Source of the DNA: Heteronotia binoei
Lineage: Eukaryota
Length of the DNA: 64,000 nucleotides
NCBI RefSeq assembly: GCF_032191835.1
Contig: NC_083224.1
Location: forward strand, 58,094,001 to 58,158,000
Direction: 5' to 3'
The position numbers were made by a program, and so were the translations under genes. The notes beneath the pieces were generated by a model. It searched no databases. It was not told the DNA's origin and saw only the letters and a list, made by a program, of their open reading frames with translations. This document shows, one piece after another, positions 26,015 to 54,787 of this stretch. Position 1 is the first letter of the stretch. The number at the start of each line of letters is the position of its first letter.

Positions 26015-26087
26015 ATGGAGCCCTTGTTGAGAGGTCTCCTAGTCCTGTTGTGCTTGCTGACTGTAGAACCAACTGAGTATGTAAATG
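26015..26087 (+). CDS. Novel chitinase-like gene, coding exon 1: signal peptide MEPLLRGLLVLLCLLTVEPTEYVN
   Basis: Strong Kozak ataATGG (alternative in-frame ATG 26000), hydrophobic core, G|GTAAGT phase-1 donor; exon has an upstream acceptor (cag ends 25983). Confidence 0.8.
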
Positions 26088-27983
26088 GTAAGTTAAAGGA
26101 GTAACAATCAAATCCAGTTTGTATACACCAGAGAGTGATCCACACAGTAGCTGCAGAGGAACCGGATGGTTATCAATGTGCATTTGGCTTCCACAATCTG
26201 CAATCCGGATGTATGGATCAATGAGTATTCTGTGTATACAATAAATAGAGGGCATTATGAGATCAGTGCAAGCTGTACAATTCACACAGCTGACCTCCAA
26301 ATTCTAGTGTTTTTGGACAGGGGAGGGGAGCTACAATAACAGAAAGAAGGCATGTAAAAATGATATAGAGCAGTGAAGCCTGAAGACCTAAATATCTGTA
26401 CAGTTTAAAATGCACTTGAATTTCAAGTTGAGTTGCTTTTAATATAATGATAAAGCAGAAAGCAGATTTCTAGTCCTCATGGCAATGTTGGGGAAAACAT
26501 TCAATTACCACAAGTTTCATCGGCAGGAACCAGGTTGAGATGTTTTGCAGACTGCAGCTGCCTTCTATGTTTTTGCTGATGTCCTGGCAGTTCTGATTAT
26601 CATACTATCACTGTGATCAATACATATATGTTTTCTTTGTCCCCCCACCCCACCCCCGTCAGTGTTCCATCTGTTCACATTTACATTGTGGACTGGTTTT
26701 CCAGGGGGAGTTTTCTGCATGCACTGAAGCATTGCAATGTTTCAGCAGCTTCAAGGAGCTGAGAAATCCCTTTACGAGTACATTCCCCACCCACCACACC
26801 AACCTTGGAGTTGTACCTGGTGTGTGTGTCTCATTCTCTCTTTTGTTGCCTCTTTTCCCACATTTGAGCATTCTCCCCCAAAAAATTTTGAATTCCTTTC
26901 CCTGACTTACATCAGTATACAGTTCACAACAGCTTGTTTCCTTCAATTACATCCTTTTAGGTAGCTGCATGCACTGCAAAATGTATTTGAAAATAATCTG
27001 GGATGTGCTGGAATCTGATTTTGATTGTAAATGAAGGAATAATAAGGAAGGAAGGCAATGATTGGCTGCTCGTGCTGGGCCTCTGAATGGGACTGTAATT
27101 TTGTTCCAGGGCAGGCATGCTCCAACAATGAAACATTGAAACACTAGCACACAATTTAAACAAAAAATTGCTGTAGATTATTTTTTTTCTGGGCAGGTTT
27201 GTGTGGCAATCCACATTTTGAACAAGTGGCTATCTTATGAATTCATGCTGCAATACAGAAAAGAAGTACAGGAAAAGCTAGTTTAGGAAAGAAAGGGTGA
27301 AATATAGGATGGCACAGGGATGTCAACAAAGTTGCCTGTTTATGCACATGCACACACATGGTAAAATAGGGGAATAAAAATGGGACATTACGGCAATCTG
27401 GAAAATGCCTGAATTTGCTAGGGTCGAATTAGTGCCAGCTCTTATGTTCTAAATTCTGATGACTGGTCTATAGGCACCTACCTTTCTCATCTGTCCTCTT
27501 AATTTGCTTCTCTTCTGGGCCCTGTTCCCTCTCTCAATTTCCCATTTCCCATCAGCCATGGCTCTCCTCTTCTGTTTTCTTGAGCCCCTCTTTGTAAATT
27601 TGCTAGAACATAAGAAGAACCCTGGTCGGTCAGACTGATGGTTCATCTTGTCCAGTATCATGTGCTTTACAATCTTTGCTCAACCAGCTTTCTCTTTCTC
27701 CCTCCTTACTTCTCCTGGCCTCCTTGAGCCCTAAAACACTTCCAAAATTCCTGGAGATAAATTATTCCCAGAATTTTGGGAGTGTCTTCTTGGGTCATTC
27801 CTGATATCCCTGAACAGATCAAAAACAATGATTGTGGATGTTTTTGACTTGGGTATACCTGGACGCACATTCCCCACCTGAGACCCTAGAAAGCTGCTGC
27901 CAGAGTAGACAGAATAGGACTAGACTGATCACTGTTCTTGCTCAATGTAAGTCCATTCAACATGTATTTTATCCTTTCTTCAG

Positions 27984-28106
27984 AGAATGCAACACAAGGA
28001 AAAATACCATCGAGATTCTGCAATGTCTATAAACATGTTGCCACAGTTGCTGGAACAGGAGGATCTAAAAATATATCCTTCTGGCATCCAAATTGTCCAT
28101 TTGAAG
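27984..28106 (+). CDS. Novel chitinase-like gene, coding exon 2 (ENATQGKIPSRFCNVYKHVATVAGTGGSKNISFWHPNCPFE), Vps62-like
   Basis: 123 bp, phase 1-1, ctttcttcag acceptor and GTAAAG donor, open frame; Y..V...GTGG...ISFWHP motif. Confidence 0.85.
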
Positions 28107-31100
28107 GTAAAGATAAAAATGTCAGTAGTTTCAATATTACTGCGCCCACATATTTCCTTAGAAAGGTAAAAGCAAGAATCTTTGAGTGTTGGCTTCAAAT
28201 TTTCAGCATGATCATAGCATCTTTGCACTAAAGTGAAAGATGTCTTTACACAGAACTGTGCTCTGTTCTCATTGAACCATCTAGATGTGAAAAGGAAATT
28301 TATTTTCCCGAGATAGACCACATGAAAAAGAGCACATTTCTTTTTAAGTATTCTTAGCTGAATAACAAGGCAGGCTTAATACTGGTTTTGGAGCTTACCT
28401 GTATGTAAGTTTGGGAGGGGGTGAATTGTTCAAAATAATCTTGAGGCATTTGCAGGGACCACTTTGAGGAAAGGGTTAACTACCCCTTTCATGCCCCAGC
28501 AGTCGTCTCCTGCAAGAGCATCCCCCCCCCCCCCCAAATGCTGCATTTTCCTTAATAGGTAAGCATAGGAATGAGAATTTCTTCTAATATGTGACTCAGC
28601 CCTTAATTTACATCCTGTGCTTGGATATGTTTGTTGTTCTGACTGTAGAAAAGGTGCACAGGAGACTGAATTGGCAGCTAATTCTTATAGACAGAAACAT
28701 ATAGAGTTTTCATTCATGATATATGGGAAGCCAGTACGAATGATGAGGAGGGGAGGTGGTATATATACCCCAATCTCATCAGATCTTGGAAGCTAAACAG
28801 GGTTGATATTTGGATGGGAGATGGCCAAAGAAGGCTCTGCAGGAGGACTGTGTGGTGATTCCAGGTGCTGATTCTCTAGGAGAGATTTTCTAATGTCGTT
28901 CATGACAGCATAGAATCCAGCCTGCTTACTGTGCCTTCTTCCCATTCCAAAGTGCTGATGAAACTGACATGGTGGGAAAAAAATCTTGTAGATTTACTTA
29001 CCATTTTGTGGAGGAGGAGCAGTATTATAGTGTACAATGGCTGGTATACATGCACATGCTATTTTTGTGTTTCAAGTACCCACTTTGTGGAACAAGAGCA
29101 ATAGAAAAGCCCTGTGCCATAATGCAAGGGAAGAGGGTGGATTCCATGAATACAGGCTGAAGGAAGGAGGAGAGATGGTGGGGCAGCTGGTGACAGATGA
29201 GCAAGCTAACCTAGTTCTCACCATGGCTCTGCCAAGTGCTGAACACAGCATGTGAGCTCTCCCTGGAGATCGGAATATAGTTGCCTTGTTTTTTCCTACT
29301 GCCATACCATTCCCTCTGCTGCTGGGCCACCTGCTCTCTCCATCTGGGTAGGAACTCAGTACTATTTTTAATATATCCAGTATGATAAACACTCTATCAC
29401 GCTAACACCCAGGGACTAGATAATGTGCAATTGCAACAGAATAGGATGAGCACCAGCAAGATATGACAAACAATTTTATACATTGGTTTTATGAAACCAG
29501 TGAATATAAATAAGTGGCCACCATCAATAATGCAAGCACACTGGAGGTCATGGGGATGGGTTATGGACAGCAGCTACTGTTATTCAGCCTTTTAAAGCAG
29601 CCTGCATATGAGTGTCCCTCCCCTAATACTGATTTTGATTGACTGAGGTCAGGTGCATTTTTGTATCTGTACTATCTACTTTCTTCACGGTGAAGATATT
29701 TTCAAATGATGGCCATGATACTTTGTGCAAATGTAACATGCCTCCAGATCTATCTACTTATCAATCATCAATATATCTGATTCTCAGTGTGCCCCATCTT
29801 TAAAGATTGGAGCCATGACCAGACAAGACAGATCTTTCTATGCACCTGGAGAATTCCCCAAGTTTGCAGAAAAATCTGAAATCTAAAATAAAAATAAAAA
29901 GCACCCCCCAAATAATAAAAGCAGCACCTGTACCTTTAAGAAATGAACGCCCTCTGCAGTGGCCACTGTGGGCATACTAGGCAGCCACAATAATATCACC
30001 AGCCTTAAAACCTTTGTCTTAGTCAGTAAAAGGTAGGGCGAGGGCCCTTTTCAGGGCTGTTGCTGTGATCTTTGAGGGAAGACTAATTGGAGCTGGACCC
30101 AGCAGCAGTCACTTGATACCACATTCATCCAAGGACTGGCTGCTTGCTACTGTTCAGCAGCAGCCACCCCATGAAAGCCAGTGTGGTGTAGTGGTTCAAA
30201 TTTCAGACTAGGATTTTGGAAATCCATGTTTGAATCCCCACTTTGCTATAGAATGCCACTGAGTAACCTTGGGCCAATTATACATTCTCAGCCAAACTTA
30301 GCTTCTGCAGTTGTGAGGATAAAATGGGGAAGAGGAGAATGATGTTAGCTACTTCAGGTGCCCACTGTTGAAAGAGGTAGGGTATAACTGAAATAGAGTA
30401 ATAACAATAAATATAGATGGAAATGGAAGGCAGATAAAAATAGGTGGGTGGAAAAGAAGGATGCCAGGAAATATGAAATATGAAGGAGGAGGGACAGAGG
30501 AAATGGTGTGGGGAAATGGAGACAGGGAAGTGAGGTGCCCTCCACAAGTCCTTGCAGATTTGCCGTGGTGTGGCTAGGCTTTGCCCCACAGCAGGTACCA
30601 TGCAACTAGGCTGGGCCTGGGCCTGTGGTCAGCACCACACAGTTTTCTCAGGGAGAGTGAAGGAGGGAGAGGTGATGACTGAGGGAGATAAAAGGAGATT
30701 GGTTGGTGGATGGGAAGAATAGACAGAAGTAGGAAAAAGGGGAGGCTATGGTGACTCTTAGGAAAGGGAAAATAGTGGAGGAAAGGAAAATAAAATGCCC
30801 CTCAAAATGTTTTTGAGATTAACAGACATGTTTCTATATCCTCCATTTTATCTGCACAACAATCCTGTAATGTAGGTTAGGCTGAGAGCCTGGCCAAAGA
30901 CCATTTTGTGAGCTTAGTGCTAGAGTACGGTTTTAAACCCTGGTTTCCTCAGTCCTAGACCGCCCTGGATCCAGCAATGCACAAACAGAAACATAAATGG
31001 ACTAAGCACAGTTCTGCTTACACATGACCTTGTGCAATATCTAGGGCTTTCCTTCCTATATCTTATGGTGCCCAGAAATTGCTTCCACAGTGTCTTCACA

Positions 31101-31418
31101 CTTTTGCTTACATAAGGATCTTTGTGGTAATCTTCTGGGAGATCCAAGTCCTAGTCTAATATTCTAACCAGTACTCCACACTGGCTGAAGGAGTTAATTG
31201 TTCAATCAATGTAGCTTAGTGTGTCATTAAAATCTTTTAAATATATTTGCATATAGCAGCAGATATGTCTGAATATGAGACACAAGAAGGCAACTGTATT
31301 TTTAAATGAGAAGTGGATATTCTTCACTACTCAAAACTCTGCTTTGTTCTGAACAGTGTCAAGGTGAGAAAATTCTTGAACTTGGTGTAACTAACACCAC
31401 CATGTTGTCTCCTTCCAG

Positions 31419-31530
31419 GCTATTATTCTCTTGGAGATGTGGTTAAAAGAGGTCCTGGACAGCCTATGACTTGGGCTTTGATGGTAAAGGAAGAGAGTAA
31501 TGGTCTTCTGAAACATCCTCAAGGTTTCAG
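31419..31530 (+). CDS. Novel chitinase-like gene, coding exon 3 (GYYSLGDVVKRGPGQPMTWALMVKEESNGLLKHPQGFR), Vps62-like
   Basis: 112 bp, phase 1-2, ctccttccag acceptor and GTACTT donor; GYY.LGDV motif. Confidence 0.88.
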
Positions 31531-32419: not shown

Positions 32420-34520
32420 TGTTGCTTGCCAAGAACTATGACATCTTGTGATTTGGATGTTATGCCTCTGTTTTTACACCCCAAAATTTCATTAGCCTTT
32501 TTTGTCACTTCATCACACTGGCTGCTCATATTTAATTTACAGTCCACTCATACCCCAAGATCTTATTCACATACACTGCTACCTAGAAGTGTATCCCCCA
32601 TCCAGTATGTATGTTCTCCATTTTTGTTATCCAGATGTAGAACTCAGCACTTATCCTTGTTAAATTGCATCTTGTTCACTTCCACACACTTTTCCAGCAT
32701 GTTCACATCTCGCTGAATTCTATCTCTGTCATCTGGTATGTTTGCTGATCCTCCCAATTTGGTGTCATCTGCAAATTTAATGAGTAGCCCCTCCACACCC
32801 TCATGCCGATCATTTATAAAAATATTGAAAAGTACCAGGCCCAGAACTAAACCCTGTGGCACCCCACTGGACACCTCCCTCCATTCAGATGAAATGCCAC
32901 TGACAAGTACTCTTTGAGTGTAGTTCTCCAACCAGTTCCCTGTCCACCTATCCTAGAGTCCAATCTACAGTCCTCTAGCTCAGTTGTCCCCAACCTATCT
33001 GGCCCCAGGGACCGGCCCCCAGGGACCGGCCCACTGACCACAACCCAGAGCAGGCAGGGTGGGGGGGACCCAATTTGGCCTCCCCCCCATGGCGCCTCCT
33101 CCCTCCTGTTTTCCTCCCCCATTTTCCTCCTCCCTCCCTCCCCCTGCACAGCCTCACTGCTTCCTCCTCCCCCCATTTTCCTCCTCTCTCCTCCCCCCCC
33201 CTTGCAGCCTCACCACATCTTGACTCCTTGCACCTTGACTCCTACTTTGTTCTACTGCTTCAGACCAACACAGCTGCCCACCTGGATCTATCCTTCTCCC
33301 CATTTTCTTCCCTTGCCCCGCCCCATGCAGCCTCATCACCTCTCCCCCCCCCCCGTTTTCTCCATTTTAAGGCTGGGGAAGGGGTGGTGAAGTTCTCCCA
33401 GGCTGCCCACCCCCTGCCAAACAGCTGCGGAGGAAAAACTGCCGCAGCCAGTGGCAGCCCAGGGCACGTCGCGCCCCAGGCAGGCACCCCCCAAAGCACA
33501 TCAAACCACCCCCCCTGGGCCCACAGCGCTCACCCCCTCCTTCCCTTCCCTTTCTGTCCTGTTCCATCACCTTCCCCCCCACCCCGCCCCGCTCGCAATC
33601 ACAGCGCGCCACGGCGGAGGGGGGGGAAGCAACAGGACAGGAAGGAAAGGGGATGGGGCGGGTGGCGGTGGTGAGCTTGGAGGAGGAAGCAGACACACCT
33701 TGGCCAGCAGGGCAGGGGGGAGGGAGGCAACAGGAAGGGAAGCGAAAGAGATGACAGAGGAGGAGGCAGGCATGCCACGACTGCAGAGCCCAGGCATAGT
33801 GGGGTGTGAGGCAGAGGAACAGGAAGGGAAAGGAAGGGTGGCTGGTGGCCGGCAGCGAGCGACACTGCCCTTGCCTCCTTCCCATTTGAGGAGGAGGCAA
33901 GGGCAGCATCGCTAGAAGCTGTTTCAGCAGCTTTCCCAGCCAATCAGGTGATTGGTGGGAGGGGAGAGGCTGTGCAGAGGGCGAAGGAGGGAGGAGGAAA
34001 TGGGGGTGTGTGGAGGAGGCCCACGGGGGGGGGGGGGTGTGTGGCGAGGCTGCATGGCCCATGGAAAACAGGCAGTGGCCCACTACCGGTCCCCGGCCCA
34101 GGGGTTGTTGTCCCCTGCTCTAGCTTACCCATCATAACATCATGGGGAACATTGTTAAAAGCTTTACTGAAATTAAACAACATCAACAACATTCTCTTGA
34201 TCCAGTAAGCTCATCACTCAATCAAAAAAGGAAATGAGGTTGGTCTGGCAGGACTTGTTGGGGACAAATCTTTTCTGACACCCCCGGATCACTAAGTTGC
34301 CCTTTAGATGCTTGCAGATTGATCCCCTTAAAATCTGCTGCAGTATCTTTCCTGGGACAGAGGTCAGACTGACTGGCTTGTAGTTTCCTGGGTCATCCCT
34401 CCTCACTTTTTTCAAAATTGGGATAACATCTGCCCTCCTCCAGTCTTATGGCACGTCTCCCCTCCTCCAAGAGGTTTGGAAGATGATGGACAAAGGCTCT
34501 GTAAGCTCTCTAGAAAGATT
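32420..34520 (-). mobile_element. CR1 LINE RT fragment interrupted by a hAT element
   Basis: VSSGVPQG...LFNIFIND...IKFADDTKLGG (32644-32931) and NYKPVSLTSVPGK (34218-34415). Confidence 0.88.
32981..34117. mobile_element. hAT (Charlie-like TIR) non-autonomous element with a GC-rich low-complexity interior
   Basis: Imperfect TIRs cagttgtccccaacc / ggttgttgtcccctg; perfect TSD ctctagct. Confidence 0.85.
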
Positions 34521-36971: not shown

Positions 36972-37109
36972 GGAACTCTGGAAAAAGAGAAACCATGGAG
37001 CAAAGACTGAAATTAAAATACTTGAAATGGAGTGTTCAAATGGATATAAAGCTCTAGGTAATGTAGTTATTAAGGGCTACAATCCGCATCCTGATTGGCA
37101 TCGTTACAG
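36972..37109 (+). CDS. Novel chitinase-like gene, coding exon 4 (ELWKKRNHGAKTEIKILEMECSNGYKALGNVVIKGYNPHPDWHRYR), Vps62-like
   Basis: 138 bp, phase 2-2, ttttttag acceptor and GTAAGT donor; GY.ALG.VV..GY.P motif. Confidence 0.88.
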
Positions 37110-38143: not shown

Positions 38144-38250
38144 GTGTGTCAATGAAAGTCTGTTAGTACACGGAAAATCTGAATTTATCTTAAGTCTGAC
38201 CGATGAGTTTGGAGCATGGGAAATTGAAGCAGATCATGCTGTATCTACAG
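38144..38250 (+). CDS. Novel chitinase-like gene, coding exon 5 (CVNESLLVHGKSEFILSLTDEFGAWEIEADHAVST), Vps62-like
   Basis: 107 bp, phase 2-1, tttctatag acceptor and GTAATC donor; completes the YRCV motif across the junction. Confidence 0.85.
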
Positions 38251-41010: not shown

Positions 41011-42983
41011 CCTGGACTAAAATGGGACTAGATAATCCATGCCCTCCAAGAGCACTTGAAGCTGCATAGCTATCACTTACTCAAGCACTTTGTCCAAGAA
41101 TGGCATGTTGGCCACTGGACTAGTTATATAGGCCATTTGGGTCCAGCGATCAGGGGCAAGTTGGGGGGCCCCACCCAGCCTACCTTGGCTCCATCTCCAA
41201 TCCTATCCTCAGCACATTACATTCTTGCAACCCAAAGGAGGGAGGGAGAGCATTCTGGCCAGCCCCAAGCAGAAGCCTGGAAGAAAGGATGGATATAATG
41301 CATCCTCTTTCTCCCTTTGCTTGGTTTTCTATTCCCCACTACCATATTTCCCATTGATACCTCTGATTAACCTTGCAGTTATAAAACAGAAATCTACAAA
41401 GTCATTTTAAATACTAATATTGAAAGAGCACAGACTTGGTAAGGGGAAAAAACCACAGAGTAAAAAATACTAGAAGTAATCAAAACATTAAATATTGATA
41501 AACCTCCAGGAAGGAAGGAATTCTCAGCAGAATTCTGTAAGCAGTCCAGCAACAAAATACTGACTTCCCCTAACTGATCTCTTTCATGCTGTCCTAAAGA
41601 AGGGCAGAATCTTCGAGATATAGTGAGAGACAAAAGTAGTATATGTATCCCATGAATTGCATCCCATGGTATCCTACTTCCTGCTGAAACAGGACAGAAA
41701 GTTATTCACATCTCTGATTGTTGGCAGAATTTTTAAATCAAGGAATACATAATAAACCATTAAATGTTATGCTATTGAACCAAATGTCAGACAACATCAG
41801 ACATCCTTAAATATTATAAACTATAGCAAAATTAAGTCCATCACATCCCTACTGACTGGCAGCATTAAGCTTTTAATCAAGGAAGGAATACATTTTGCCA
41901 AACCTTTATGTGAAAAAAGTCATACAACCTTGGTTTTCTATAGTTTATTTTTTAATGCAACAAGAAGTCCTACCAGCTAATGCTCTGTATCAATCTCTGA
42001 TTTATTTTTAGGTAATTAGTTTATCAGTAATATTTTATGTTAATTGTTTTTTAGTTTAATAGACTAATCAAATAGTTAATTGTGTCATATCTTAATAAGT
42101 ATAAGAGCTTTGTTATATCTTTAGTTGACCTATGCTTTAATGTAGCCATATTATGTATGAAACAGTATTACGTGTAAGAACTGTGGTAGTTTATTCTGTT
42201 AAAAAGTTAATAAAAATTGTAAATGGGGAAAAAATGAAGGAATACATAATAAACATTAATGTTTTATGCTATCAAACCAAATGTCAGACAACATCAGACA
42301 TGCTTTAAACATTATCCATTTTAACAAAATGAAGTCCATCCCCTTCACAAAAATTTAACTTACTGCTGAGAGAGCTTCACAGAATGATTCATACCAAAGA
42401 TAGAAACATACAAACTTTGGACTATATTCTTCCAGAAAATATTTTAGAGCAACCCAAAAGCCATATGTGGAAGTTAATGACTTCCAATTGATAGACTTCC
42501 TGGTTTGGCGAGAACTCAACAGGGATAACTGTTGTCTCCCTTCTTCCTTGTCATGTCTCTAGAGTCCCCAGCTGAAGCAATTAGATGCAACCCTAATCAC
42601 CATAAGATTAGCTTTTCCCCAATGATATAATACTTTATGCCACCTTCCCAGAAACCTCAGTTTTCTATATTCAAGAGAAATTGGACAAATATACCAGAGT
42701 GTTGGCTTTTAAAATAAGCCTCCTGACCTGCAGAGCTATTAGCTCACATGGGTCTCATCACCTTAGGAATAAACTTTCTCAGGGTTCGAAAGGGTTGCTG
42801 AGGAGAAGAATGTGAGAAAGATCCATGATCCTTGTGTCCATGATCACAGGATCTAACCTAGTGTATGAGGCCCCTTTTAAATCTATTTGGTTGAAGTATA
42901 TCGATATAGCATGCTATCAATAAGGAAAAAGTGCTGTTATGTTAACCTTTGTATCTGGATTATTTTAGATGGCTTATCTGCAG

Positions 42984-43100
42984 GAACTTTTATAATTATG
43001 ACCAATCACCCTGAACACATGGAAAGAGTCTACGTCCTCAATGAATACAAAGTTATGTTAAAACAACATGCATCTCTTCAGTCAAATGATTCTGAGGATG
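42984..43100 (+). CDS. Novel chitinase-like gene, coding exon 6 (GTFIIMTNHPEHMERVYVLNEYKVMLKQHASLQSNDSED), end of Vps62-like domain plus linker
   Basis: 117 bp, phase 1-1, GTAAGT donor; GTF motif. Alternative in-frame acceptor at 42969. Confidence 0.82.
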
Positions 43101-43476
43101 GTAAGTTTGCTAGCAAGAAGAATCAAGTTATATTATATATGAATGTTGGGATCACATATTACCATTTGTAGACTTTCTTCCAAACAGAATGTTAGAAAAA
43201 GTTATGTACATAGCAAAAGGCTTACATGCCCCAACATCTTTATTTATTTATCTGTTTATTTATTAAATTTTAATTATTTTTTACCACCCTTCACAACTTG
43301 TGTGGGGCTCAAGATGGTTAAATTTTTTTTAGTTCAATACAATGTAAAACAAGGTAAAACCACAAAGACACAATGTTTAAAACATTCAGAACATTTAAAT
43401 ATTTGAAAACATATACAGCCAATTTAGTAGTGTGATTGATAGATAAATAGATCAAGATGGGTAGTCTGTCTGTAGC

Positions 43477-43755
43477 AGAAGAAGAAGATATTGGATTTAT
43501 ATCCCGCCCTCCACTCCGAAGAGTCTCAGAGCGGCTCACAATCTCCTTTACCTTCCTCCCCCACAACAGACAACCTGTGAGGTGGGTGGGGTGGAGAGGG
43601 CTCTCACAGCAGCTGCCCTTTCAAGGACAACCTCTGCCAGAGCTATGGCTGACCCAAGGCCATTCCAGCAGGTGCAAATGGAGGAGTGGGGAATCAAACC
43701 CGGTTCTCCCAGATAAGAGTCCGCACACTTAACCACTACACCAAACTGGCTCTCC
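43477..43755 (-). mobile_element. tRNA-derived SINE with (TTC)n tail, of a type I associate with gecko genomes
   Basis: Minus strand: ggtgtagtggttaag A box, ggtttgattcc B box, body, tcttcttcttct tail. Confidence 0.85.
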
Positions 43756-44349
43756 AGTAGCAGTAGAAAAGAAGAGCAAGACTGATTTCCCATTCACCTT
43801 ACGCCGCTCTCACGTTCGTCTTCTCAGAGGGGCTTCCTTCCTTCTGATTTCACGCTATCTGCCTTGGGGCTGCAGCAAGCTTCAGCATTTCTGTGCGGCA
43901 AACAGAAACTGGTTTTTAGAGGTTTCTGTTTGCTGCATGAAAACACCAATGCTTGCTGCAGCCCCGGGGCAGATAGCGTGAAATCGGAAGGAAGCCTCGC
44001 TGAGAAGATGAACATAAGAGTGGTGTAAGGTGAGTGGGAAATCGGTCCAAGAGTCCAGTAGCACCTTAAAGACTAAGGAATGAAGAAGTGAGCATTGACT
44101 CACAACAGCCTGCCACAAAGTTTGTTAAGGTGCTATTAGACTCAGCGCCACATTATAACTTTTGTAGGTCCTAGGCACTTTTCCTGTGGGGATTGTGTAC
44201 GGTGTTCTGCACAATTTCCATATGCCTTGCAGATAGGTGTCACATTCAGTGAACCACCTGACACTCCAAAAGATCAGCTTTATAGCATAAGCATGAAACA
44301 ATACTGTAGATTTGTTAAAACAACCACACAATTTTTGTTTTCTTACCAG

Positions 44350-44554
44350 GGTCTCCTTGCAAGATTGTATGTTACATCACTAAGTGGGCTCAATTCCGGC
44401 GTGATCCTACAAAGTTTTACCCAGAGGATATAGACCCAGATTTGTGCACTCATATAACATTTGCCTTTGCGATCATAAGCAAAAACCAACTCTCCCTTAA
44501 TGGATGGGATGAAGGAAGTGTCCTTTTCTCCCAGATTCAAACATTAAAGAAGAG
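44350..44554 (+). CDS. Novel chitinase-like gene, coding exon 7: first GH18 exon (SPCKIVCYITKWAQFRRDPTKFYPEDIDPDLCTHITFAFA...)
   Basis: Clear GH18 motifs VCY..WAQ.R and IDP.LCTH..AFA; 205 bp, phase 1-2. Confidence 0.95.
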
Positions 44555-45568
44555 GTCAAGTTTTGTTTGTTGGTTTTTAAAATGCTTAGATACAATATGA
44601 GATATAAATGTGAGCTGAGAGGGAAAGGCTGCTTACACTTTGTATAATATTTAAGCATTCTATGGGGAGTCTGAAGACTCAGATTCTATTCTAGCATAAA
44701 TTGATCTAAACACTAAGAGGATCCAAGGAAGAATTTGCCAGGTAATGATTTATAAACAGGATAAGAAAGTTGTAAGAAAGAAAATATTGTTTTGGCCTTA
44801 CTGATATACTGTTAGCCATCCATGGGTGAGAACTGCGGATATCTAAAACTAAGGATTGGGTCCATTTGGAGGCTAAAGAGATTTTTCTGCACACTTGAGA
44901 GACTCCCCAGCTGTGCAGAAAAATCTGAAAATAAAAAAGCTGTGAAGAGGTGGCAGCTGTGAAGCCCAGGGCTCATGCTGGACCCAGCAGCCGTGATAGT
45001 GGCTACTCAGTTGGGCCTCCATACTGGGCTCAGCAGTGGCAGTAGCATCTGCACAGCCCAAGGCTCTCCATTGGGTCCAGCGATGGCAGTGGCTATGCAT
45101 CCTGGGGCTCTGTGCTAGACCCAGCAGTGCCCCATGCAGCCTGGCAGCCACATTGGGCATACTGCTGCACTGTGGCTGGGCTCCCAAGGAGTCATGCCAG
45201 ACAGTGATTGGGGGAGTGAGATTCTGCCCTGCAAGTTTTGTGGGGGGCCTACATGATTTAGCAAACACAGCATGTCCAGTGGTTCACCAGAACATCTCTA
45301 ACACCTGTCACTGAAGGGGGCAAGGGATTCCCTTTACTAGAGGGAGTCAAGAAGCAGCAGCAGAGATACTAGGGCTGTTAATGCCACTCTATATAGGCAC
45401 CCAGCTCCTGAATGAATAGTGAAATCTGGTGCTGGCAAATGATGCCATCAGTTTCACCCATGACAGTTAGTACTAGCTAATGATGAGCAGCTGTGTGTCT
45501 ACGCAATGCTTCAGTGGCAGCCCTGATGTCTCTGTGGCTTCCTCTAGATATTCTCTACTGACAGCAAC

Positions 45569-45733
45569 CAGGGCTTTTTTTCTGGAAAAAGAGGTTCCGG
45601 AACTCTCAAGAGGGAAACGGAGAAACACATGGGCGCCCCTCATGAACTTTTAAATATTTTTTTATAATTGTGTTTCCAAAAGAGGTTCCAGAACTCTGCC
45701 ACTGCATTTCCCCAGGGGGAAAAAAAGCCCCTG
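45569..45733. mobile_element. hAT MITE (CAGGGCTTTTTT family)
   Basis: TIRs plus perfect TSD acagcaac. Confidence 0.88.
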
Positions 45734-46021
45734 ACAGCAACAAATTCTCTTCAGGGACTTTCAGGGGCAGTTTTCCAGGCAAACTGCTACAATAGCCTTC
45801 CAAAGCAGCCATTTTCTTCAGATGAATTGGTAAGCATCCAATAGCAGCCAAAACATCTAGTAATGAGAAATACAAATATCCTGAATCTGAGTTTACATGT
45901 TTGGTTTGCTGAAGTGCATGTGTGTGTGTGTAATAACAATGGTTATAGATTTCCTACAAAAAAAAAACCTGCTCCCAGTTTTTTACTTAAATATATCAAA
46001 TATATTTCATTTTTTTCACAG

Positions 46022-46075
46022 AAATCCAGCATTGTTTATTTTGTTAGCTGTTGGAGGAAACAGATTTGGCACTGC
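46022..46075 (+). CDS. Novel chitinase-like gene, coding exon 8 (NPALFILLAVGGNRFGTA)
   Basis: Equivalent of the GH18 K.LLAIGGWNFGT exon; 54 bp, phase 2-2, GTGAGT donor. Confidence 0.92.
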
Positions 46076-46597
46076 GTGAGTTTTCTCATTCACTTTTGAA
46101 AGGTGAAAGGACAGGGATAGTGATGGCAGACATGATAAGGAGCTAATGACTGGGGAGGGGTATGTGAACTAAGCTACTACTGTCACCAGACTTCCACTTG
46201 TGAACCTCCTTCTGCTTGAGGCAAGGGAAGGTGGGAGGAAATCTACTTCTGTGATCTCTTGCAATTGATCCAATTTTCTCAATAGGCTCTGGTTCTGTAT
46301 AAGCAGCAGCAAATCCTATTTGGTTGGTCATCTCTTCTTTGATACTGTACTTGCTAGCACCAGAGGTTTGATTTGCTTGTGTCTCCTGGAGAGCAGGCAT
46401 TTGAGTGTGTGGGGGGTGGAGAGGCATATACTATATACTCTCCTCAATGACAGAACACAGTAGACAGAAATGTTTTCCTGAATTTGACAGGACACAGGCT
46501 GTACAGATGGGGAGGAGGGGTGTTGGAGAGGCTAATGAGACATGAAAAAATATCAGTGGTATGGAAGGATATGAACTCTCTACCTGAGATAGATCGA

Positions 46598-46706
46598 TGG
46601 GTAGCTGTGTTACTCTGTCTGTAGTAGTAGAAAAGAGTTCAGTAGCACCTTAAAGACTAACAAAGAGTATGAGCTTTCATGAGTCACTGCTCACTTCTTC
46701 AGATCC
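46598..46706 (-). mobile_element. Penelope-like terminal-repeat fragment containing a minimal type I hammerhead motif
   Basis: Minus: GGAT CTGAAGA A GTGAG cagtga CTCAT GAA AGCT C ATAC; related copies at about 23080, 38700, 44080 and 47845. Confidence 0.7.
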
Positions 46707-48294
46707 TTTTCACTTCTTCATAGTCTCAACCTGAGAAACTATGCAAATCATTCTGAGCTCAGTCAATGTTTTAATTGTATTTAAAACCTTATGGGGGGTG
46801 TCAGATCAGTGTTATGGCACTGAGCAGGACAGGGAAAACAATGTTTTGTTTTTAGTTCAGGCCCCAATGGGGTGATCCTCACATTTAAGCATGTCTATCT
46901 GTTCATGGGTGGAATAGTTTATGGTCAGATAATTATAATGCCCATGAGGAAGGCTGTTTGAATCCTGTGCCCTCCTGTGTTGGATTCCCCTGCATGAAGC
47001 AAGATTTGCATTTGCTCCACAGAAATCCAAGGAGGGGTGTTGGAAGTCAACCTTCTGTATGTTAACTTTAGCTTAGTGTTCCATTTTCCTGTTTCTTTCC
47101 TTAGTTCTGTACAACTAGTAGGCATGATCAGGGCCAGTCCTAGATTGGGCTATCATGCCCAGTTCAGTGCCCCTGAAGGCTGGTGCCCTAGGCGATAACC
47201 TAGTTTGCCTAGTGGCAGGGCCAGCCCTGGCCATATTTATTTTTCCCGACTTGTTCTCTAGCTTAACCTGTGGACTTGTAACAAAAGGAAAAAACTGTAT
47301 AAAAGTAACAACTGTTGATACAAGTCTTGGCTTGCTACTCTATATTTTGAAACAATTTATTATCAGTATTATTGACAGAAAAACACTACCCACTAGATGC
47401 CAGATTTTAACATTGGCAAAATTACAATAGAAGGTTTATATTACAGCAGCAGCAGCAGCAATGGATTGCCTAGGTAACTATCCATTTAATTCGCCTTCTT
47501 TAGGCTGCAGTACACTAGTTAAAGCCTTGAATTCAATAATGGAATGCCCAGTATTTCCATCAAATTTATATTTAGACACTGTGCTTAGCACAGAGACATT
47601 TTGAATCTGACAAAGGGTAACCCCTAATGGAAGACTGTTGATCTTTGAGGCTCCAACTGAAACTGTCTATACAACAACTGTAAAAACTGGAGAGTGTCTA
47701 AATATAAATTTGAAGGAAGAAATGTTGGTTGTCTTGAGCTGCTCTTACATCTTTTATTTCCTAAGAAATGTAAAAATACCTACTTCTTCTGTTTATAGAT
47801 TCAGGTGGGTAGCCGGGTTGGTTTGAAGCAGCAGAACAAAGATCTGAAGAAGGTTGCATGCATGCACATAAAAGCTTCTATCTTGGATAAAACTTTATTG
47901 GTCTTAAAGGTGTCACTGGACTCCAAGTTTTTCTTCTATTGAGTTTGTCTAAGACTCTACCTCCTTGAAATCTGAAACCCATGTTCTTTACCTGTTCAGA
48001 CAAAGTTTGTTCTCTACTTTTATTGACTGAATTCATGGTTTCTTTACTACCACCTTGAAGAATAAAGTCATGAGCCGACAAGCTATTTTATCAGATTGGG
48101 AGCAGCAGTTTTTTGTTTTTGTTACCAGTAAGAGGGAACAATCCTTTGTCCTGAATCTATAATACTTTGATACATTTTATAGCGTTGATGAACTAGATCT
48201 CAACCATTCCTTTACCAACTCATTCAGAAAGACTGATAAACTTTCAAGCTCTCTATAGAACTGTTGTTTAATGAAGCACTTTCCCCACCCCCAG

Positions 48295-48460
48295 TTTCAG
48301 CCCCATGCTTTCCACAACAGCCACCCGCAAGAGCTTCATTGACTCAGCTGTATCCATGCTACGGAGTTATGGCTTTGATGGAATCGAACTGCACTTTAAA
48401 TATCCTGGGAGTGGGAGAAGTCCCGCTAAGGACAAGCATCGCTTTGCTTCACTGACTGAG
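48295..48460 (+). CDS. Novel chitinase-like gene, coding exon 9, carrying the degenerate catalytic motif FDGIELHFKYPG
   Basis: 166 bp, phase 2-0; LRSYGFDGIELHFKYPGSGRSPAKDKHRF aligns to [29 protein letters not shown] of AMCase. Confidence 0.95.
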
Positions 48461-48538
48461 GTATGAAATCAATAGGTTTAGCCAATTATTTGGTTCTACT
48501 AAGCAGGGAAGAAGCTGAAAAGACCTTTGCTTTCCTAG

Positions 48539-48663
48539 GAAATGACAGCAGCTTTTGAAAAAGAGGCCAGAGAGACTGGAAATAAGAAGCTGTTACTTGC
48601 TGCAGCAGTTGCTGCTCGGAAAGAAACAATTGATGCTGCATATGAAGTTGGCAAACTGTCAAA
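48539..48663 (+). CDS. Novel chitinase-like gene, coding exon 10 (EMTAAFEKEARETGNKKLLLAAAVAARKETIDAAYEVGKLSK)
   Basis: 125 bp, phase 0-2, canonical splice sites, GH18 similarity. Confidence 0.95.
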
Positions 48664-48783
48664 GTGAGCTGAAAGAAAACTATGATTTTTCTGAGAGCAT
48701 TTTTTGGGGAAATAAAGTCTGATATAACAATGAAAAAAATCTTTCTATAATTGCTTTCTAACTCTAAATTATTTTTGTTGCAG

Positions 48784-48907
48784 ACATCTTGATTACATTA
48801 ATGTAATGGCCTACAATTTCCATGATGGTTTTTCTGACACAGTGACAGGGCACAACAGTCCCTTGTTTGCAGGTGATCACTCTGAGGAAAGCCTGCATTC
48901 CAGCTGT
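48784..48907 (+). CDS. Novel chitinase-like gene, coding exon 11 (HLDYINVMAYNFHDGFSDTVTGHNSPLF...)
   Basis: 124 bp, phase 2-0; LDY..VM.Y and TGHNSPL GH18 motifs. Confidence 0.95.
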
Positions 48908-49002: not shown

Positions 49003-49185
49003 AAGTTTGCCATGCTGTACTGGATCCAAAAAGGTGCTCCTGCTTACAAACTCATTATGGGATTTGCCAACTATGGACATACCTTCAAGCTTAGCACCAG
49101 GAACACATCAGTGGGTGCCCCTGTCTCTGGACCTGCCCATCCAGGACGTTATACTTTTGAGGCTGGATTCCTGTCATACTATGAG
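49003..49185 (+). CDS. Novel chitinase-like gene, coding exon 12 (KFAMLYWIQKGAPAYKLIMGFANYGHTFKL...GFLSYYE)
   Basis: 183 bp, phase 0-0; YW...GAP..KL.MGF..YG motif. Confidence 0.95.
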
Positions 49186-50194
49186 GTGTAAAGAAATGGT
49201 GAAAACAAGAAGCTCTCTGCTTCTTAGCTTTCCTATGGCTTACCTAACCTATTTTTACCCCCAAGTCAGATGTTTAATTCAACATATGGTAGCTCAAAAC
49301 AATATGTTGGCATTGTTTAAATTTTGATGTGTTGCCATTTCTGTTCTCAACAGAAAAAACTATACTCAGTCAGCAGCCATATTTCTAGTAGGGTCCATAT
49401 GGTATAGTGGTTAGAGTACTGGACTACAATCTTGGAGACTCTAGGTTTGAATCCCACCTCTGCCATGGAAGCTTGCCTAACTTATCTCATTGGGTTGCTG
49501 AGTGGAGGAGGGAAGAATGTTGTAAGCCACTTTGGATCTTCATGGGGAAGAAAAGTGGGGTATCAAATAAATAAAAGTAATTTCTTGAAACAGAGCTGTA
49601 GCTGGGGAAGTAGGTTAGTATAGTCACAAAGTGCTTTTTCAATTACATCCTATGCAGATTCATGTTACTGTAATGGCAAAGCCTGGCTATAACTGGATAC
49701 ATTCTATGTGGGGCTGCCCTTACAACATGGAAACTGTAATTGGTGCAAAGTGCACTAGCTTGACTTCTGGCTGGACCTGTCCAATTTGTGCATATAGCAA
49801 CTCACAAAATTGCTAACTACATTGGCAATAGAGTGAGTGATTCTAGCAATCACAGTCTGAACAGCAACATAGCCTGATATCAATTTAAAGAGTTACCTTT
49901 ATTATTATTATTATTATTTTAAAAAACAGTATATTAAAGAAGCTCATGGCTTGTGTCAGTAGATAAGGGAAAGAGATATTTTACTTGAATCCCCATCATT
50001 GCTGGATTATCCAATGATGCATTTTGCTTGTAAGGCTGTCCCAATCCTCACAGAAGTTTCTGAACAAACAGCAGGCTGCTTAAGGAGATGGTAAGGGAGG
50101 AAAAATCCATTCTGCCAACAGCTTCCATGAGCTCTTTCAGTGGATCCAACCTATATATTGCATCTCTGATGGCACTGTACTCAAGTGTTATGAT

Positions 50195-50392
50195 CAGGGC
50201 TTTTTTTGAGCAGAAATGCACAGGAACGCAGTTCCGGTTGGCTTGGTGTTGGGGGTGTAGCCTAAACATGCAAATATGTTCCTGCTGGGCTTTTCCTTCA
50301 AAAAAGCCCTGCGTGAAACAATTGTGATGCTAGGGGTGTGGCCTAATATGCAAATGAGTTCCTGGTGGGCTTTTTCTACAACAAAAGCCCTG
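50195..50392. mobile_element. hAT MITE (CAGGGCTTTTTTT family)
   Basis: TIRs plus perfect TSD gttatgat. Confidence 0.9.
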
Positions 50393-50449
50393 GTTATGAT
50401 ACACTGATAAAATCGCCAAAGTTTTTCTAATACCATGGTATGTTTGCAG

Positions 50450-50569
50450 ATCTGCAACTTTATAAAGGATGGTGCTACTGTTAAGTGGCTTGATGACCAG
50501 AAGGTTCCATATGCCTACAAAGGTTTTACCTGGGTTGGATATGACAACAAAAAGAGTTTTAGTTTCAAA
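50450..50569 (+). CDS. Novel chitinase-like gene, coding exon 13 (ICNFIKDGATVKWLDDQKVPYAYKGFTWVGYDNKKSFSFK)
   Basis: 120 bp, phase 0-0; Q.VPYAY...WVGYDN motif. Confidence 0.96.
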
Positions 50570-51427
50570 GTAAGGCCTAGTTTTCTCACCATGACCTTTT
50601 CTTTGCTTTAGCATCATGCTTCTCAAAGTGATCAGAATATATATATATATTCAAGGTGCTCCTACCACATTACTGAGAGTCATTCTTTATACCTATTCTG
50701 TGTTATTTGCAGCTCAATCATCCAGCAGTTTATTGTTTAGACAATCTTTGTTGTGAGAGGAGGGAAAAGAAGTAATCTGCTCTCTCTCACACAAATTCAG
50801 TATACATATATGCCATGCATTAAGATTTAATCTCTAGAGAAATGCATGAGAGACTAAATTTTTCAGAACTTTACTATACATGTGGATTAGAGGCCAGTAG
50901 CTCCTTAGAGACCAACCGGATTTTTGGGTATAAGCTTTTGAGAGTCAAAACTCCCTGCCTCAGATGCAAATACACATGCATGCATTGCAAACTAATACAT
51001 TTTTACAAAATGTACTTTTACAAAATGCAGATAAACATCTGCTCAAAAGGGAAGAAACAAGGACAAATTAAGCACCATCTTATATTAAAAAGAGGTATAA
51101 TAGTGTTTTTTTTTAATAATTTTATTTATTACTATTATCATTATTTTAGTAATGAAATTTTACTTGTTAAGATTTACAACCATTTATGGATAGTTTGGTT
51201 TGTTTTAACTCCTTTTCAATACGTATAGAAATCTCTATATGTATTTGTGCCATTGATTTTGTTATATTCTTGATGGTATACTTTATCTTAATAAATGTTT
51301 TAAATTTGGGGGGGGAGGGGTATAAAGAACCAGTAGTTGACCTGGTAAATATGCGAAGAGGGGTATATGAGATTTATGCACAGAATTTTTAAAAAATGGG
51401 ACTACCAACCATACCTATACAGCCAAG

Positions 51428-51740
51428 GCAGATTAAGGCATATGCCCTGTGGCACAGAGTGGTAAACTGCAGTACTGCAGTCCAAGCTCTGCTCATGACC
51501 TTAGTTCGATCCTGGCAGAAGCTGGGTTCAGGTAGCCAACTCAAGGTTGACTCAGTCTTCCATCCTTCCAAAGTTGGTAAAATGAGTACCCAGCTTGCTG
51601 GGAGGAAAGTGTAGATGACTGGGGAAGGCAATGGCAAACCACCCTGTTAAAAAGTCTGCCAAGAAAACGTCATGATGGGGATGTCACCCCATGGGTCAGT
51701 AACAACTTAGTGTTTGCACAGAGAACTAACCTTTTCCTCT
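51428..51740 (+). mobile_element. Sauria SINE
   Basis: tggcacagagtggtaaa head, ggttgactcagtcttccatccttcc core, ggcaatggcaaaccacc BovB-like tail. Confidence 0.85.
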
Positions 51741-52646
51741 TTTTACCCTCATACATTCAAACTTCCCAGTTGACATCCCTCAAAAGTATAATCTTAACAG
51801 GTGTGTCCTTATATAACAGGCCTGTTTCCTTGAAATAGTTTGATTTTTCTCTGTTAATAGTGAACAATTTGCATGGTTTTGGAGCTGAGTCTGCCTTGTT
51901 AAGTTTCCCACTTAAAAAAAAGTCTATGCCAAGAAAGGCAGAATTCTTCTTTCTGTCTGAATGATGCAATACAATAAATGTGCTTCTCTTAAATAGGGTG
52001 ATTACTGCCAGACCTTGGGTTGGATCTGGCAATCTCTCAGGAGAAGAGGCTGACAAGTACTCACTTGGGCTTTCCCCTTTGATCAACAACCATGTCCAAA
52101 CCCAGCAAAATTTTATTCCCAGGATCACGGAACCCAACTTTGGGTTGGGAGATTGCAGAAGGATGGGGTAGGGGGAGGTGACATTTCTCTCTCCTGCCTC
52201 TTCTATCAGTGAAACTCCACTGACTGAAAAAGCAGAAGGGAATGATTTTACTCCCCTCCCCACTGTAGCCTTCCAACCTGGATGGCTGTTATTCCAGGTA
52301 GTCCCATGACCTGGAAATAAACTTTGCTGACATTGGCTGCTGGGAGGAGAGGAGAGCTGAGAAGATTGGGGATTCCTGTATAGACCTTGCATTTGGTGTG
52401 TGTGCTGAATCCAACCCATTTTGGAGGATACAAAGAGTAAAGATCTGCACTTCCTGGTGTCTATAAATTCTATTTGGTCCTTTCTCTGGATCCTTAGGCC
52501 ATGCCTGAAATGGCTCCCAGACTTGCAAGCTTATTTTTTAAAACAAAAACTGAGATTCCCAAGATAGTCAATACAACTATCTGTGCTTGAGTGTTGCAAT
52601 TACAGAATCACAGAATTCACATTGCCTTGGTGGCTTTCACTTACAG

Positions 52647-52782
52647 GCCCGGTTTGTGAAGAAGCGCAAATTTGGTGGAGTCTCAATATGGGCCATGGAC
52701 CTGGATGACTTCAGAGGCACCTTCTGCAATGAAGGACCTTACCCTCTGACAAGGGAGCTGAAAAGACTGCTTGAGGGCAATG
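52647..52782 (+). CDS. Novel chitinase-like gene, coding exon 14 (ARFVKKRKFGGVSIWAMDLDDFRGTFCNEGPYPLTRELKRLLEGN)
   Basis: 136 bp, phase 0-1; FGG..IWA.DLDDF.G.FC..G.YPL motif. Confidence 0.96.
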
Positions 52783-54056
52783 GTGAGAGGATGCCTGGGA
52801 GACTTTTAAGGGAGTCAGAAAGAATGTCAAAGCAGTTGTTCCCATCCAGCATTTATGATGTTGTTAATTATTTAATATTGATAATCTGTCCAGCAAAAAA
52901 ACTCCACTTGAGCTGGCTCACAATCACAATCAAATCACATTTAGCCCTGCCCTTGCTTTGCTGCTGTGTTCTAATGAGGAAGATGTTTTGTATTATCATT
53001 AATCATTGCCTGATTTGTTTCACATCTGCTTACTGGCACATGCACCATGAACTTGGGCCAAATTATACAGCTATCAAACTGTCCGGTTATTTCACAGTGC
53101 ATGATCAGTCCCTTTGTATGCCTTATTCCATAAGTACTTACTATTAATCTTTACAATCTCATTTAGTACCAAATGATGCACCCAACCCTTTGCAACTGGG
53201 TACTTTCCTATTACAGATTGGATGCAGGTGAAAAAGAGTGCTTCTGGCAGGTTGCGTGATAGTGGCTCGAAGTCTTGAGGGGTCTCTGGCAGTCAGCCAG
53301 GCAGCAGCTATGGCTGGGCCAGTCAAAGAGTCATCAGGGGTACAGCACCCCAGGGACTAACATGTTACAATTATACTTCTTCATGCCCTTCTGATAAAGT
53401 ACCAGATCAGCACAGTAGGAAACAAGCTTCTGTATTTAGATGAATTAATTCTGTTCTTTTTTTGTAAAGGCTTAAAAGGAGCCCATAGGAAAGGAACTAC
53501 TGCTATGGATTTCATCTTAATTGCATTTTCTGCCAGCAGAAGGTGTTTTGCTGATCTCCCCCACTCCCACTTTGTTCCTCATGTTGTTGCAGAGGATTTC
53601 AGGAGGCATGGAAGGCTGCAATAGAAGGAGGGTCATCATAAAGTTCTCATCTTCGAATGCTGTTGCATAGGAGTCAAATTGCATAGGAGCCAAGCCTATA
53701 TATTTTACTAGAAACTCATTTCTATTCAATAATTAACTTCCAGCTCATGCAACAATTAACTTCCAGCCCAATTCTGAATATGTTTAGTGGGAAGTAAATG
53801 TCAATACATTCAGTTGGATTTACTTCCTGACAAAACTCACTTAGAATGGTTGCCTTTCTATCAGTTGCATATTATTCACAATATATCTGTATTGTTTTAC
53901 AACTGGATCATAATTGCTATAGCTTATGATACAGCTTATCACCCTTCCTGTGGCCACTGTTTTTTTTTATAACTGTAGTGGCCAACAGAAAGAGGTTAAG
54001 ATATTCTATTACTGTTATACAAGAAGTCAGTGATTGATCCTATACATATCTTTCAG

Positions 54057-54787
54057 TGTGCAGCGATGCTGGACATATCACGGTACAAGCAAAAACCCTT
54101 CGACCACCCACCACTCTTCAGACTTCTACCACCCTTCGACCATCTGCTCCTTTTCAAACTTATGCCACCCTTCAAACATCTGCTGTCCTTCGAACTTCTA
54201 CCACCCTTCGACCTTCTACCACCATGCGACCATCTACCACTCTTCAAGCTTCTACCACCACCCAACCGTTCACCACCATTCATACTTCTACCAGGCTTCA
54301 ACCGTTCACTGCCCTTCAAAATTCTACCACCCTTCAACTGTTTACCACCCTTCGACCACCCACCACCCTTCAAACTTCTACTGCCCTTCAACCACCCACC
54401 ACTTTTCAACCTTCTGCCACCCTTCAACCTTCAATAAGTTTTGGTAGAGGATTTTGCAGGGAAAAACCTGATGGCAATTACTCTTACCCATCTGACCCAC
54501 GTAAATACTTTATTTGTGCAAGCAAGACAGTATATATCAAGCTTTGTTCTCAGAACATGGTCTATGATGAATACCAAAAGGAATGTATGCGGTCTGTTTT
54601 GCCACCTGGTAATTTTTGTACACTTAAATATGATGGCTACTACCCTTACCCTGAGGATCAACAAAAATATTTTGTATGTGCTGAAGGGCAAACATGGATT
54701 CTGAATTGTCCAAAAGGTGAAGTATTCAGTAAAATCATCAGATGGTGCATAGTGTCACCAGATATTCTCACTGGGGATGGACTGTGA
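54057..54787 (+). CDS. Novel chitinase-like gene, last coding exon: Thr/Ser/Pro-rich hexapeptide repeats plus two CBM14 (peritrophin-A) domains
   Basis: tttcag acceptor gives phase-1 continuation GN|VCSD; FC...DG.Y.YP.D..KYF.C....C....F....C pattern twice; TGA at 54785-54787. Confidence 0.92.
54095..54436 (+). repeat. Coding minisatellite, 19 x 18-bp units (TL[RQ][PT][SP]T)
   Basis: Direct reading: acccttcgaccacccacc-like units in register. Confidence 0.92.

Follow-up and report, generated by a model that had tools for sequence, protein, structure and literature searches.

A fifteen-exon gene at the Heteronotia binoei locus

The window analysed here is a 64,000-nucleotide stretch of the Heteronotia binoei genome (assembly GCF_032191835.1, contig NC_083224.1, positions 58,094,001 to 58,158,000), and contains a gene spanning ~28.8 kb with 15 coding exons on the + strand. 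With a probability of around 0.8, this single gene encodes a secreted protein of 842–847 aa comprising a signal peptide, a beta-tripod module, a CHIA-type GH18 domain predicted to be catalytically dead, a mucin-like stalk, and two CBM14 domains. The architecture is real and expressed. An earlier note on this DNA, made from the sequence alone, had described 15 exons of 73+123+112+138+107+117+205+54+166+125+124+183+120+136+731 = 2514 nt, joined into a stop-free open reading frame of 837 aa. The chain rebuilt from these lengths is the sole sensible set of stop-free exons bounded by AG and GT, with every acceptor AG lying behind a polypyrimidine tract, and the donors being GT, mostly GTAAG or GTGAG. 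The coordinates, splice sites, phases, and open frame all stand, with the exception of the exon 6 acceptor, which had been placed at 42984 and is found at 42969 in both an RNA contig and an NCBI protein. This site, 15 nt 5′ of the predicted one, adds five in-frame residues (DGLSA), yielding a protein of 842 aa. The coding pieces, with their predicted domain content, are:

26015..26087, + strand: exon 1, start codon and signal peptide, ending in phase 1
27984..28106, + strand: exon 2, beta-tripod repeat 1, first half; degenerate DxGSGxxxD motif AGTGGSKN, then SFWHPNCPFE
31419..31530, + strand: exon 3, beta-tripod repeat 1, second half (GYYSLGDVV...)
36972..37109, + strand: exon 4, beta-tripod repeat 2 (ECSNGYKALGNVV), the query that retrieved Vps62-positive relatives
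38144..38250, + strand: exon 5, start of beta-tripod repeat 3 (YRCVNESLLVHG...)
42969..43100, + strand: exon 6, end of the beta-tripod module; acceptor earlier predicted at 42984
44350..44554, + strand: exon 7, first GH18 exon, spliced to exon 6 in RNA
46022..46075, + strand: exon 8, GH18; VGGNRFGT where paralogues have GGWNFGT
48295..48460, + strand: exon 9, GH18; apparently dead catalytic motif FDGIELHFKYP
48539..48663, + strand: exon 10, GH18
48784..48907, + strand: exon 11, GH18; MAYNFHDGFSD where paralogues have MTYDFHGSWEG
49003..49185, + strand: exon 12, GH18
50450..50569, + strand: exon 13, GH18
52647..52782, + strand: exon 14, last GH18 exon (GGVSIWAMDLDDF)
54057..54787, + strand: exon 15, Thr/Ser/Pro mucin-like stalk, two CBM14 domains, and stop codon
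47105..47118, + strand: alternative terminal coding piece (VLYN and stop) of LOC132567301, with strong acceptor tttctttccttag, then TTCTGTACAACTAG

At the ATG at 26015, positions −3 and +4 are occupied by A and G, respectively. The start codon precedes a hydrophobic leader, LLRGLLVLLCLLTV, which AlphaFold2 models as a helix over residues 9–20, in agreement with the strong Kozak context and signal peptide that had been claimed for it. An alternative in-frame ATG with a weaker context lies 15 nt upstream at 26000 (MVLTI-); it is the start of the NCBI model, and extends the protein to 847 aa. Seven N-glycosylation sequons are present in the protein. Exons 2–6 (612 nt, or 597 nt with the acceptor at 42984) and exons 7–14 (1113 nt) are both phase 1-1 blocks, so that either can be gained or lost with the frame intact. 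No second copy of any module was found within the 64-kb window, with each exon matched once in a tblastn search of the model.

RNA contigs and reads of four H. binoei runs (X1 and X4–X6) were compared over positions 42800–48700. A single 2836-nt contig of run X1, with a depth of 39.6, aligns in pieces at 42967–43099, 44349–44552, 48295–48458, and 48537–48664, and its joints (43099→44349, 44552→46020, 46075→48295, and 48458→48537) are all GT..AG given 1–2 nt of ambiguity. The contig joins exon 6 to exon 7 (43100→44350) and continues through exons 8–10; this GT..AG junction, on which the earlier note had staked the single gene beforehand, is thus present in RNA. As the first piece starts at 42967, with an AG at 42967–42968, the exon 6 acceptor in use is 42969. 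On the 5′ side of exon 6 the contig carries 695 nt, equal to the 553 nt of exons 1–5 plus ~142 nt of 5′ untranslated region, and on the 3′ side of exon 10 it carries 1459 nt, equal to the 1294 nt of exons 11–15 plus ~165 nt of 3′ untranslated region; an AATAAA lies at 54986. In length the contig agrees with a complete mRNA containing all 15 exons, and run X1 holds 0.64 of the sampled words of exon 4 and 0.72 of those of exon 15.

The NCBI protein at this locus, “uncharacterized protein LOC132567301 [Heteronotia binoei]” (P0001, 237 aa), is 100% identical over exon 4, and its residues 6–233 equal residues 1–228 of the 842-aa model (exons 1–6), providing independent support for these exons and for the acceptor at 42969. 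P0001 ends in VLYN followed by a stop, and the sole site in the window encoding that ending behind a good acceptor is at 47105, within GH18 intron 8; positions 47105–47118 may represent an alternative last exon, one that falls within the GH18 block. The NCBI annotation either truncates or splits the gene or describes a short isoform, and its span overlaps the GH18 block. No credible phase 1 exon with an ATG and a signal peptide lies in intron 6 for a separate GH18 gene to start from.

Domain content of the predicted protein

The ~200 residues that five exons place ahead of GH18 had been proposed to be Vps62/DUF946-like, a proposal borne out by homology at 112 bits and by a match to the beta-tripod fold. 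Exon 4 (45 aa) was used as the query in an exhaustive HMMER/phmmer search over 1.84 billion representative proteins, with PF06101 (Vps62) present in 10 of the 18 matches, the best of which, P0003, was reached by exon 4 alone at E = 2.3e-11. Six of these matches are secreted proteins of 584–617 aa with two Vps62 modules, five of them with a significant aerolysin/ETX-MTX2 domain and the sixth, P0011, matching Vps62 only. Of these six, one comes from Ambystoma mexicanum (XP_069489682.1, P0011) and one from a sea cucumber, with the rest from transcriptomes or metagenomes. BLASTP aligns residues 32–216 of P0001 with residues 20–208 of P0003 (112 bits, 32% identity over 191 aa), and also aligns P0001 with the second module of P0003 (77 bits). 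A multiple alignment reveals a three-fold repeat in the relatives, IWxDxGSGAxxDxSxW...P.GY..LG, of which the squamate modules retain the hydrophobic and Gly/Pro/Trp core, with the DxGSGxxxD motifs decayed. Three Sushi-repeat proteins (P0002, P0004, and P0013) were rejected as relatives, matching by a CxxGYxLxG motif only.

Pfam gave no PF06101 match for the single N-terminal exons, nor for P0001 at E ≤ 0.01; the module nonetheless shows homology along its entire length of ~190 aa to modules that carry PF06101. A six-frame PF06101 scan of the gecko genome was silent, but so was its control everywhere, rendering the scan uninformative. Searches of the gecko genome with exons 2 and 4 found no second copy of the module.

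The AlphaFold2 model of the module (predicted local distance difference test, 82.8; predicted template modelling score, 0.76) has a beta-tripod fold. The closest solved structure is GNIP1Aa (Foldseek against the PDB, 6FBM, E = 7e-10; VIA-align, 6FBM_A, Z = 20.5 with 194 aligned residues and a root-mean-square deviation of 3.3 Å), with the C-terminal domain of Pleurotolysin B also matched by VIA-align at Z ~13. In the AlphaFold database, the best Swiss-Prot model is the Arabidopsis DUF946 protein At1g04090 (residues 45–251, E = 9e-11), and the cluster entries matched at E values of 1e-10 to 3e-14 are named DUF946, Vps62-related, or MACPF. The “partial Vps62” region of GNIP1Aa is a beta-tripod domain proposed to act in target recognition (PMC8624791, PMC7613979), a role in which PMC10683392 also describes it, with the signature D-x-G-S/T-G-x3-D in each repeat (PMC8624791); IPR009291/Vps62 is equated with the beta-tripod and is reported mainly from plants and fungi (PMC10683392). 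Judged by sequence and model together, beta-tripod is a more exact name for the N-terminal module than Vps62/DUF946-like, and the alignments indicate that it shares ancestry with the targeting modules found in animal pore-forming proteins of the aerolysin type.

The GH18 and CBM14 parts were examined exon by exon against Pfam, with exons 7, 9, and 12 matching the GH18 family PF00704 at E values of 1e-7 to 7.5e-13, all three passing the Pfam cut-off. A GH18 profile scan of the gecko genome also recovers the GH18 exons of the window. Many CHIA-type genes lie on both strands of a GH18/CBM14 cluster at C2:80.2–80.56 Mb (80199000–80560000), and the window gene (C2:58.12–58.15 Mb) is the only other GH18 match in the genome, on the same chromosome and 22 Mb from the cluster. 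Exon by exon, its GH18 part aligns with the cluster paralogues at 44–49% identity, too low for a recent copy.

The catalytic motif, FDGLDxDWEYP in the cluster paralogues, reads FDGIELHFKYP in the window gene, which lacks the DxxDxDxE pattern, whereas the three gecko cluster paralogues read at the catalytic exon have an intact FDGLD(F/I/L)DWEYP; the dead chitinase described in the earlier note is upheld by this comparison. Further substitutions are found in the regions of Trp99 (GGNRFG for GGWNFG), Asp213 (MAYNFH for MTYDFH), and Trp218 (DGFSD for GSWEG). The Trp of CYITKW (CYxTxW) and that of SIWAMDLDD (WAxDLDD) are retained, and all eight GH18 exons are open with intact splice sites. These residues predict a member of the GH18 fold that is not an enzyme but catalytically dead, and whose lectin groove appears partly dismantled.

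Exon 15 encodes the remainder of the protein. An 18-bp × 17.9 tandem array at 54110–54432 encodes a Thr/Ser/Pro stalk with 47% S+T+P, in keeping with the mucin stalk of the earlier note, and the stalk is likely O-glycosylated. The tandem CBM14 pair is likewise found, with two PF01607 (CBM_14) matches (E = 6.8e-19, 68 bits). Each of the two has four cysteines in place of the six-cysteine pattern (733/753/763/776 and 787/807/817/830), the C-terminal cysteine pair being absent, and both keep their aromatic residues. Elsewhere in the gecko genome CBM14 is found in the CHIA cluster only, and the last exon of the window gene has the hinge-plus-CBM14 layout of CHIA. Overlapping and following the stop codon, a weak third CBM14-like stretch is seen at 54752–54868 (+ strand; tblastn, 36% identity to residues 722–760, E = 0.004).

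Snake orthologues, and proposed origin and function

Five snake relatives, all annotated as “uncharacterized protein”, were found by the exon 4 search (P0017, 368 aa) and a follow-up search:

LOC113434555, Pseudonaja textilis
LOC116509435, Thamnophis elegans
LOC117663978, Pantherophis guttatus
LOC134494818, Candoia aspera
M6D78_007303, Vipera latastei

The snake proteins (364–368 aa) consist of a signal peptide, the five-exon module (~41% identity to that of the gecko), a short linker, and two CBM14 domains. Their genes have seven exons, with boundaries matching gecko exons 1–6 and exon 15, the last exon starting VC... in both. No GH18 exons or remnants were found between module and CBM14 in the snake loci (tblastn, E ≤ 1), and the long mucin repeat is also absent from these loci. 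A Shisa5-like gene with the first exon MGSWALAWTVLCSL... lies downstream of the snake genes, and is matched in the gecko window at ~57746–58054 by a GC-rich first exon (MGTWALAGMALCSL... / MGTWALAGMALCSLAAVATLGK...). This common neighbour identifies the gecko and snake genes as positional orthologues. Furthermore, the presence of module and CBM14 in one snake gene is a strong argument that in the gecko, too, a single gene contains both the module exons and exon 15, on either side of the GH18 block. At 3001–3357 of the Thamnophis elegans locus, an NCBI model (P0020, 501 aa) begins with ~140 residues of reverse transcriptase (PF00078), which probably entered the model erroneously through a transposon exon.

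Two orders of events could account for the gecko and snake genes. We favour, with some reserve, an order in which a dispersed CHIA-type paralogue gained the beta-tripod exons behind its signal-peptide exon and snakes later deleted GH18, because CBM14 is otherwise restricted to the CHIA cluster and the last exon is CHIA-like. The reverse order, in which GH18 was inserted in geckos, is the less favoured of the two.

The five exons of the beta-tripod module form a phase 1-1 block that follows the signal-peptide exon and precedes the GH18 exons. In the proposed mechanism, the CBM14 pair, and perhaps what remains of the GH18 groove, may tether the protein to chitin (of prey cuticle, fungi, parasites, or a chitinous gut matrix), with the stalk projecting the beta-tripod towards a second surface ligand, which could be a glycan, lipid, or protein. 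The most economical reading is that of a putative bivalent or trivalent adaptor, which would act not as an enzyme but as a lectin that bridges or opsonises, because the protein combines a leader, a stalk, and chitin-binding domains with no catalytic machinery, and its N-terminal relatives steer pore-forming toxins to their targets. A gut role for the gecko protein is a guess. A broader proposal, which we put forward tentatively and as the less probable outcome, is that squamates reused the targeting domain of an aerolysin-type toxin in a non-lytic, chitin-anchored pattern-recognition protein, the beta-tripod binding a ligand of prey, parasite, fungus, or gut microbe and the CBM14 pair holding chitin, with the GH18 fusion being ancestral and GH18 lost in snakes. 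If true, this would give reptiles an equivalent of the protochordate VCBPs, and amniotes their first functional beta-tripod lectin.

Several observations weigh against a single functional gene of this kind. The RNA support consists of one assembled contig from one run, with the raw-read runs X4–X6 of the same species showing zero exon coverage over 42800–48700, and the NCBI model ends at 47105, which leaves room for a short isoform, perhaps even as the dominant form. The module falls below the Pfam threshold, with no PF06101 match at E ≤ 5 for P0001, P0017, or P0022, and the D-x-G-S/T-G-x3-D signature is degenerate in all three of its repeats, which read VAGTGGSKN in repeat 1 and KRNHGAKTE in repeat 2, and have a 5-residue deletion at this position in repeat 3. 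The equivalents of Trp99 and Trp218 are lost, making sugar binding by GH18 doubtful. Additionally, pairwise dN/dS (the ratio of nonsynonymous to synonymous substitution rates) is 0.5–1.3 among four of the snakes, in module and CBM14 alike, which indicates fast or relaxed evolution and not strong constraint; such values are typical of secreted immune or digestive genes, and equally expected under weak constraint.

The locus could instead comprise two neighbouring genes, one encoding a beta-tripod protein and one a chitinase-like protein, with the exon 6–7 junction a minor read-through or conjoined transcript. The stand-alone 237-aa product of NCBI, with its last exon at 47105, and the recovery of the junction in one contig of one run only are in line with this arrangement. 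We consider it improbable, however, as intron 6 offers the GH18 gene no signal-peptide first exon, and the NCBI terminal exon lies inside the GH18 block, making the two units overlap. The depth and length of the X1 contig fit a full-length mRNA, frame and phases are intact across 15 exons, and the snake module and CBM14 exon, which bracket GH18 in the gecko, form one gene. A single gene is also compatible with GH18 being a relic, in which case the main product would be either a snake-like form, with the module spliced to exon 15, or the 237-aa form, and the long form a by-product. Exons 7–14, at 1113 nt and phase 1-1, can be skipped in frame, snakes do without GH18, and the catalytic and two stacking residues are lost; against this, the GH18 exons are present in the assembled contig, and eight open exons with canonical splice sites at 44–49% identity argue for long-term maintenance, leaving a relic GH18 block an unlikely explanation.

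The remaining alternative concerns the module itself, whose likeness to Vps62/beta-tripod proteins might be the product of a chance CxxGYxLG motif. The module has no Pfam match of its own, and some of the exon 4 matches are Sushi-repeat proteins that share the motif alone. This explanation is essentially refuted by the full-length pairwise alignment (112 bits over 191 aa), the presence of PF06101 in 10 of 18 exon 4 matches, and a fold match at Z = 20.5, with DUF946/Vps62 entries of the AlphaFold database matched at E values of 1e-10 to 1e-14. The single gene encoding a secreted beta-tripod, GH18, and CBM14 protein is the reading retained here.

The description of this architecture as new is supported by the exon 4 HMMER search, which found no protein model fusing module and GH18 among the 1.84 billion representatives, and by the literature, in which no paper was found joining Vps62/DUF946 with chitinases, aerolysin, or vertebrates. 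Searches with P0001, P0017, and the module region of P0020 (the last restricted to proteins of 276–877 aa) likewise found only gecko and snake proteins, none of them a fusion of module and GH18; as these searches require shared 5-residue words and apply length limits, they provide weak evidence of absence. Most of the beta-tripod (Vps62/DUF946) domains known so far are from plants, fungi, and bacterial toxins. All components are known; the novelty lies in the architecture, in the occurrence of a putative beta-tripod in an amniote secreted protein, and in the contrast between gecko and snakes. The phase 1-1 five-exon block between signal-peptide exon and chitinase body represents a clean case of exon shuffling, and the snakes, retaining module and CBM14 without GH18, provide a natural “deletion series”. 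The gene is also a tractable candidate for studying how chitinase-like lectins gain specificities and what beta-tripod domains bind. Due to its 237-aa truncation or splitting by NCBI, comparisons of the reptile GH18 family would miss it.

Repetitive elements are also present in the window. A repeat in intron 6 (43391–43784) shows very high RNA depth in all four runs, the summed word depth reaching ~580,000 in X1 and the reads numbering from hundreds to more than 1000 in X4–X6. Numerous variant letters and “goes back” joints also mark it, a pattern expected of an element that is high-copy, in tandem array, or SINE-like (short interspersed element); it has no Rfam match. Upstream of the gene, open reading frames of a LINE-type (long interspersed element) retrotransposon lie on the − strand at 11514–15353 (509 aa, endonuclease-like; 479 aa, reverse-transcriptase-like; and 282 aa). 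Further reverse transcriptase fragments are found at 2436–3071 and 32644–32931.

Comparison with known systems

The window gene has in common with CHIA and CHIT1 the CHIA-type GH18 exon structure, as judged from exon sizes and paralogue alignments, and the C-terminal hinge and CBM14 in the last exon of a secreted protein. Loss of the catalytic Glu is a feature it shares with CHI3L1 and OVGP1, and OVGP1 also has a mucin-like region. In contrast to the vertebrate chitinases and chi-lectins, the gecko protein has a predicted ~200-residue beta-tripod between signal peptide and GH18, two CBM14 domains where theirs number one or none, and no equivalents of Trp99 and Trp218. The window gene lies 22 Mb from the gecko CHIA cluster and adjoins a Shisa5-like gene.

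With GNIP1Aa and At1g04090, the gecko module appears to share its fold and a three-fold repeat with W...P..GY..LG cores; sequence identity is only 16–18%, however, and the D-x-G-S/T-G-x3-D signature is degenerate in the gecko. The partner domains also differ, being GH18 and CBM14 in the gecko protein, MACPF in GNIP1Aa, and DUF946 C-terminal regions in plants. The animal beta-tripod-aerolysin proteins (P0003, P0005, P0006, P0011, P0015, and P0016) are the nearest sequence relatives, with 22–33% identity over the whole unit, and are likewise secreted, with the module coming immediately after the signal peptide. These relatives have two modules, with an aerolysin/ETX-MTX2 domain in five of the six; the gecko protein has a single module and lacks a pore-forming domain.

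The protochordate VCBPs, gut immune effectors in which two V-type immunoglobulin domains are joined to a chitin-binding domain (PMC2632668), offer a functional analogy only, in that both they and the gecko protein would couple a secreted recognition module to a CBM14-type chitin-binding domain. The recognition domain is immunoglobulin in the VCBPs and a predicted beta-tripod in the gecko protein, the VCBPs have no GH18, and any homology between the two would be confined to CBM14.

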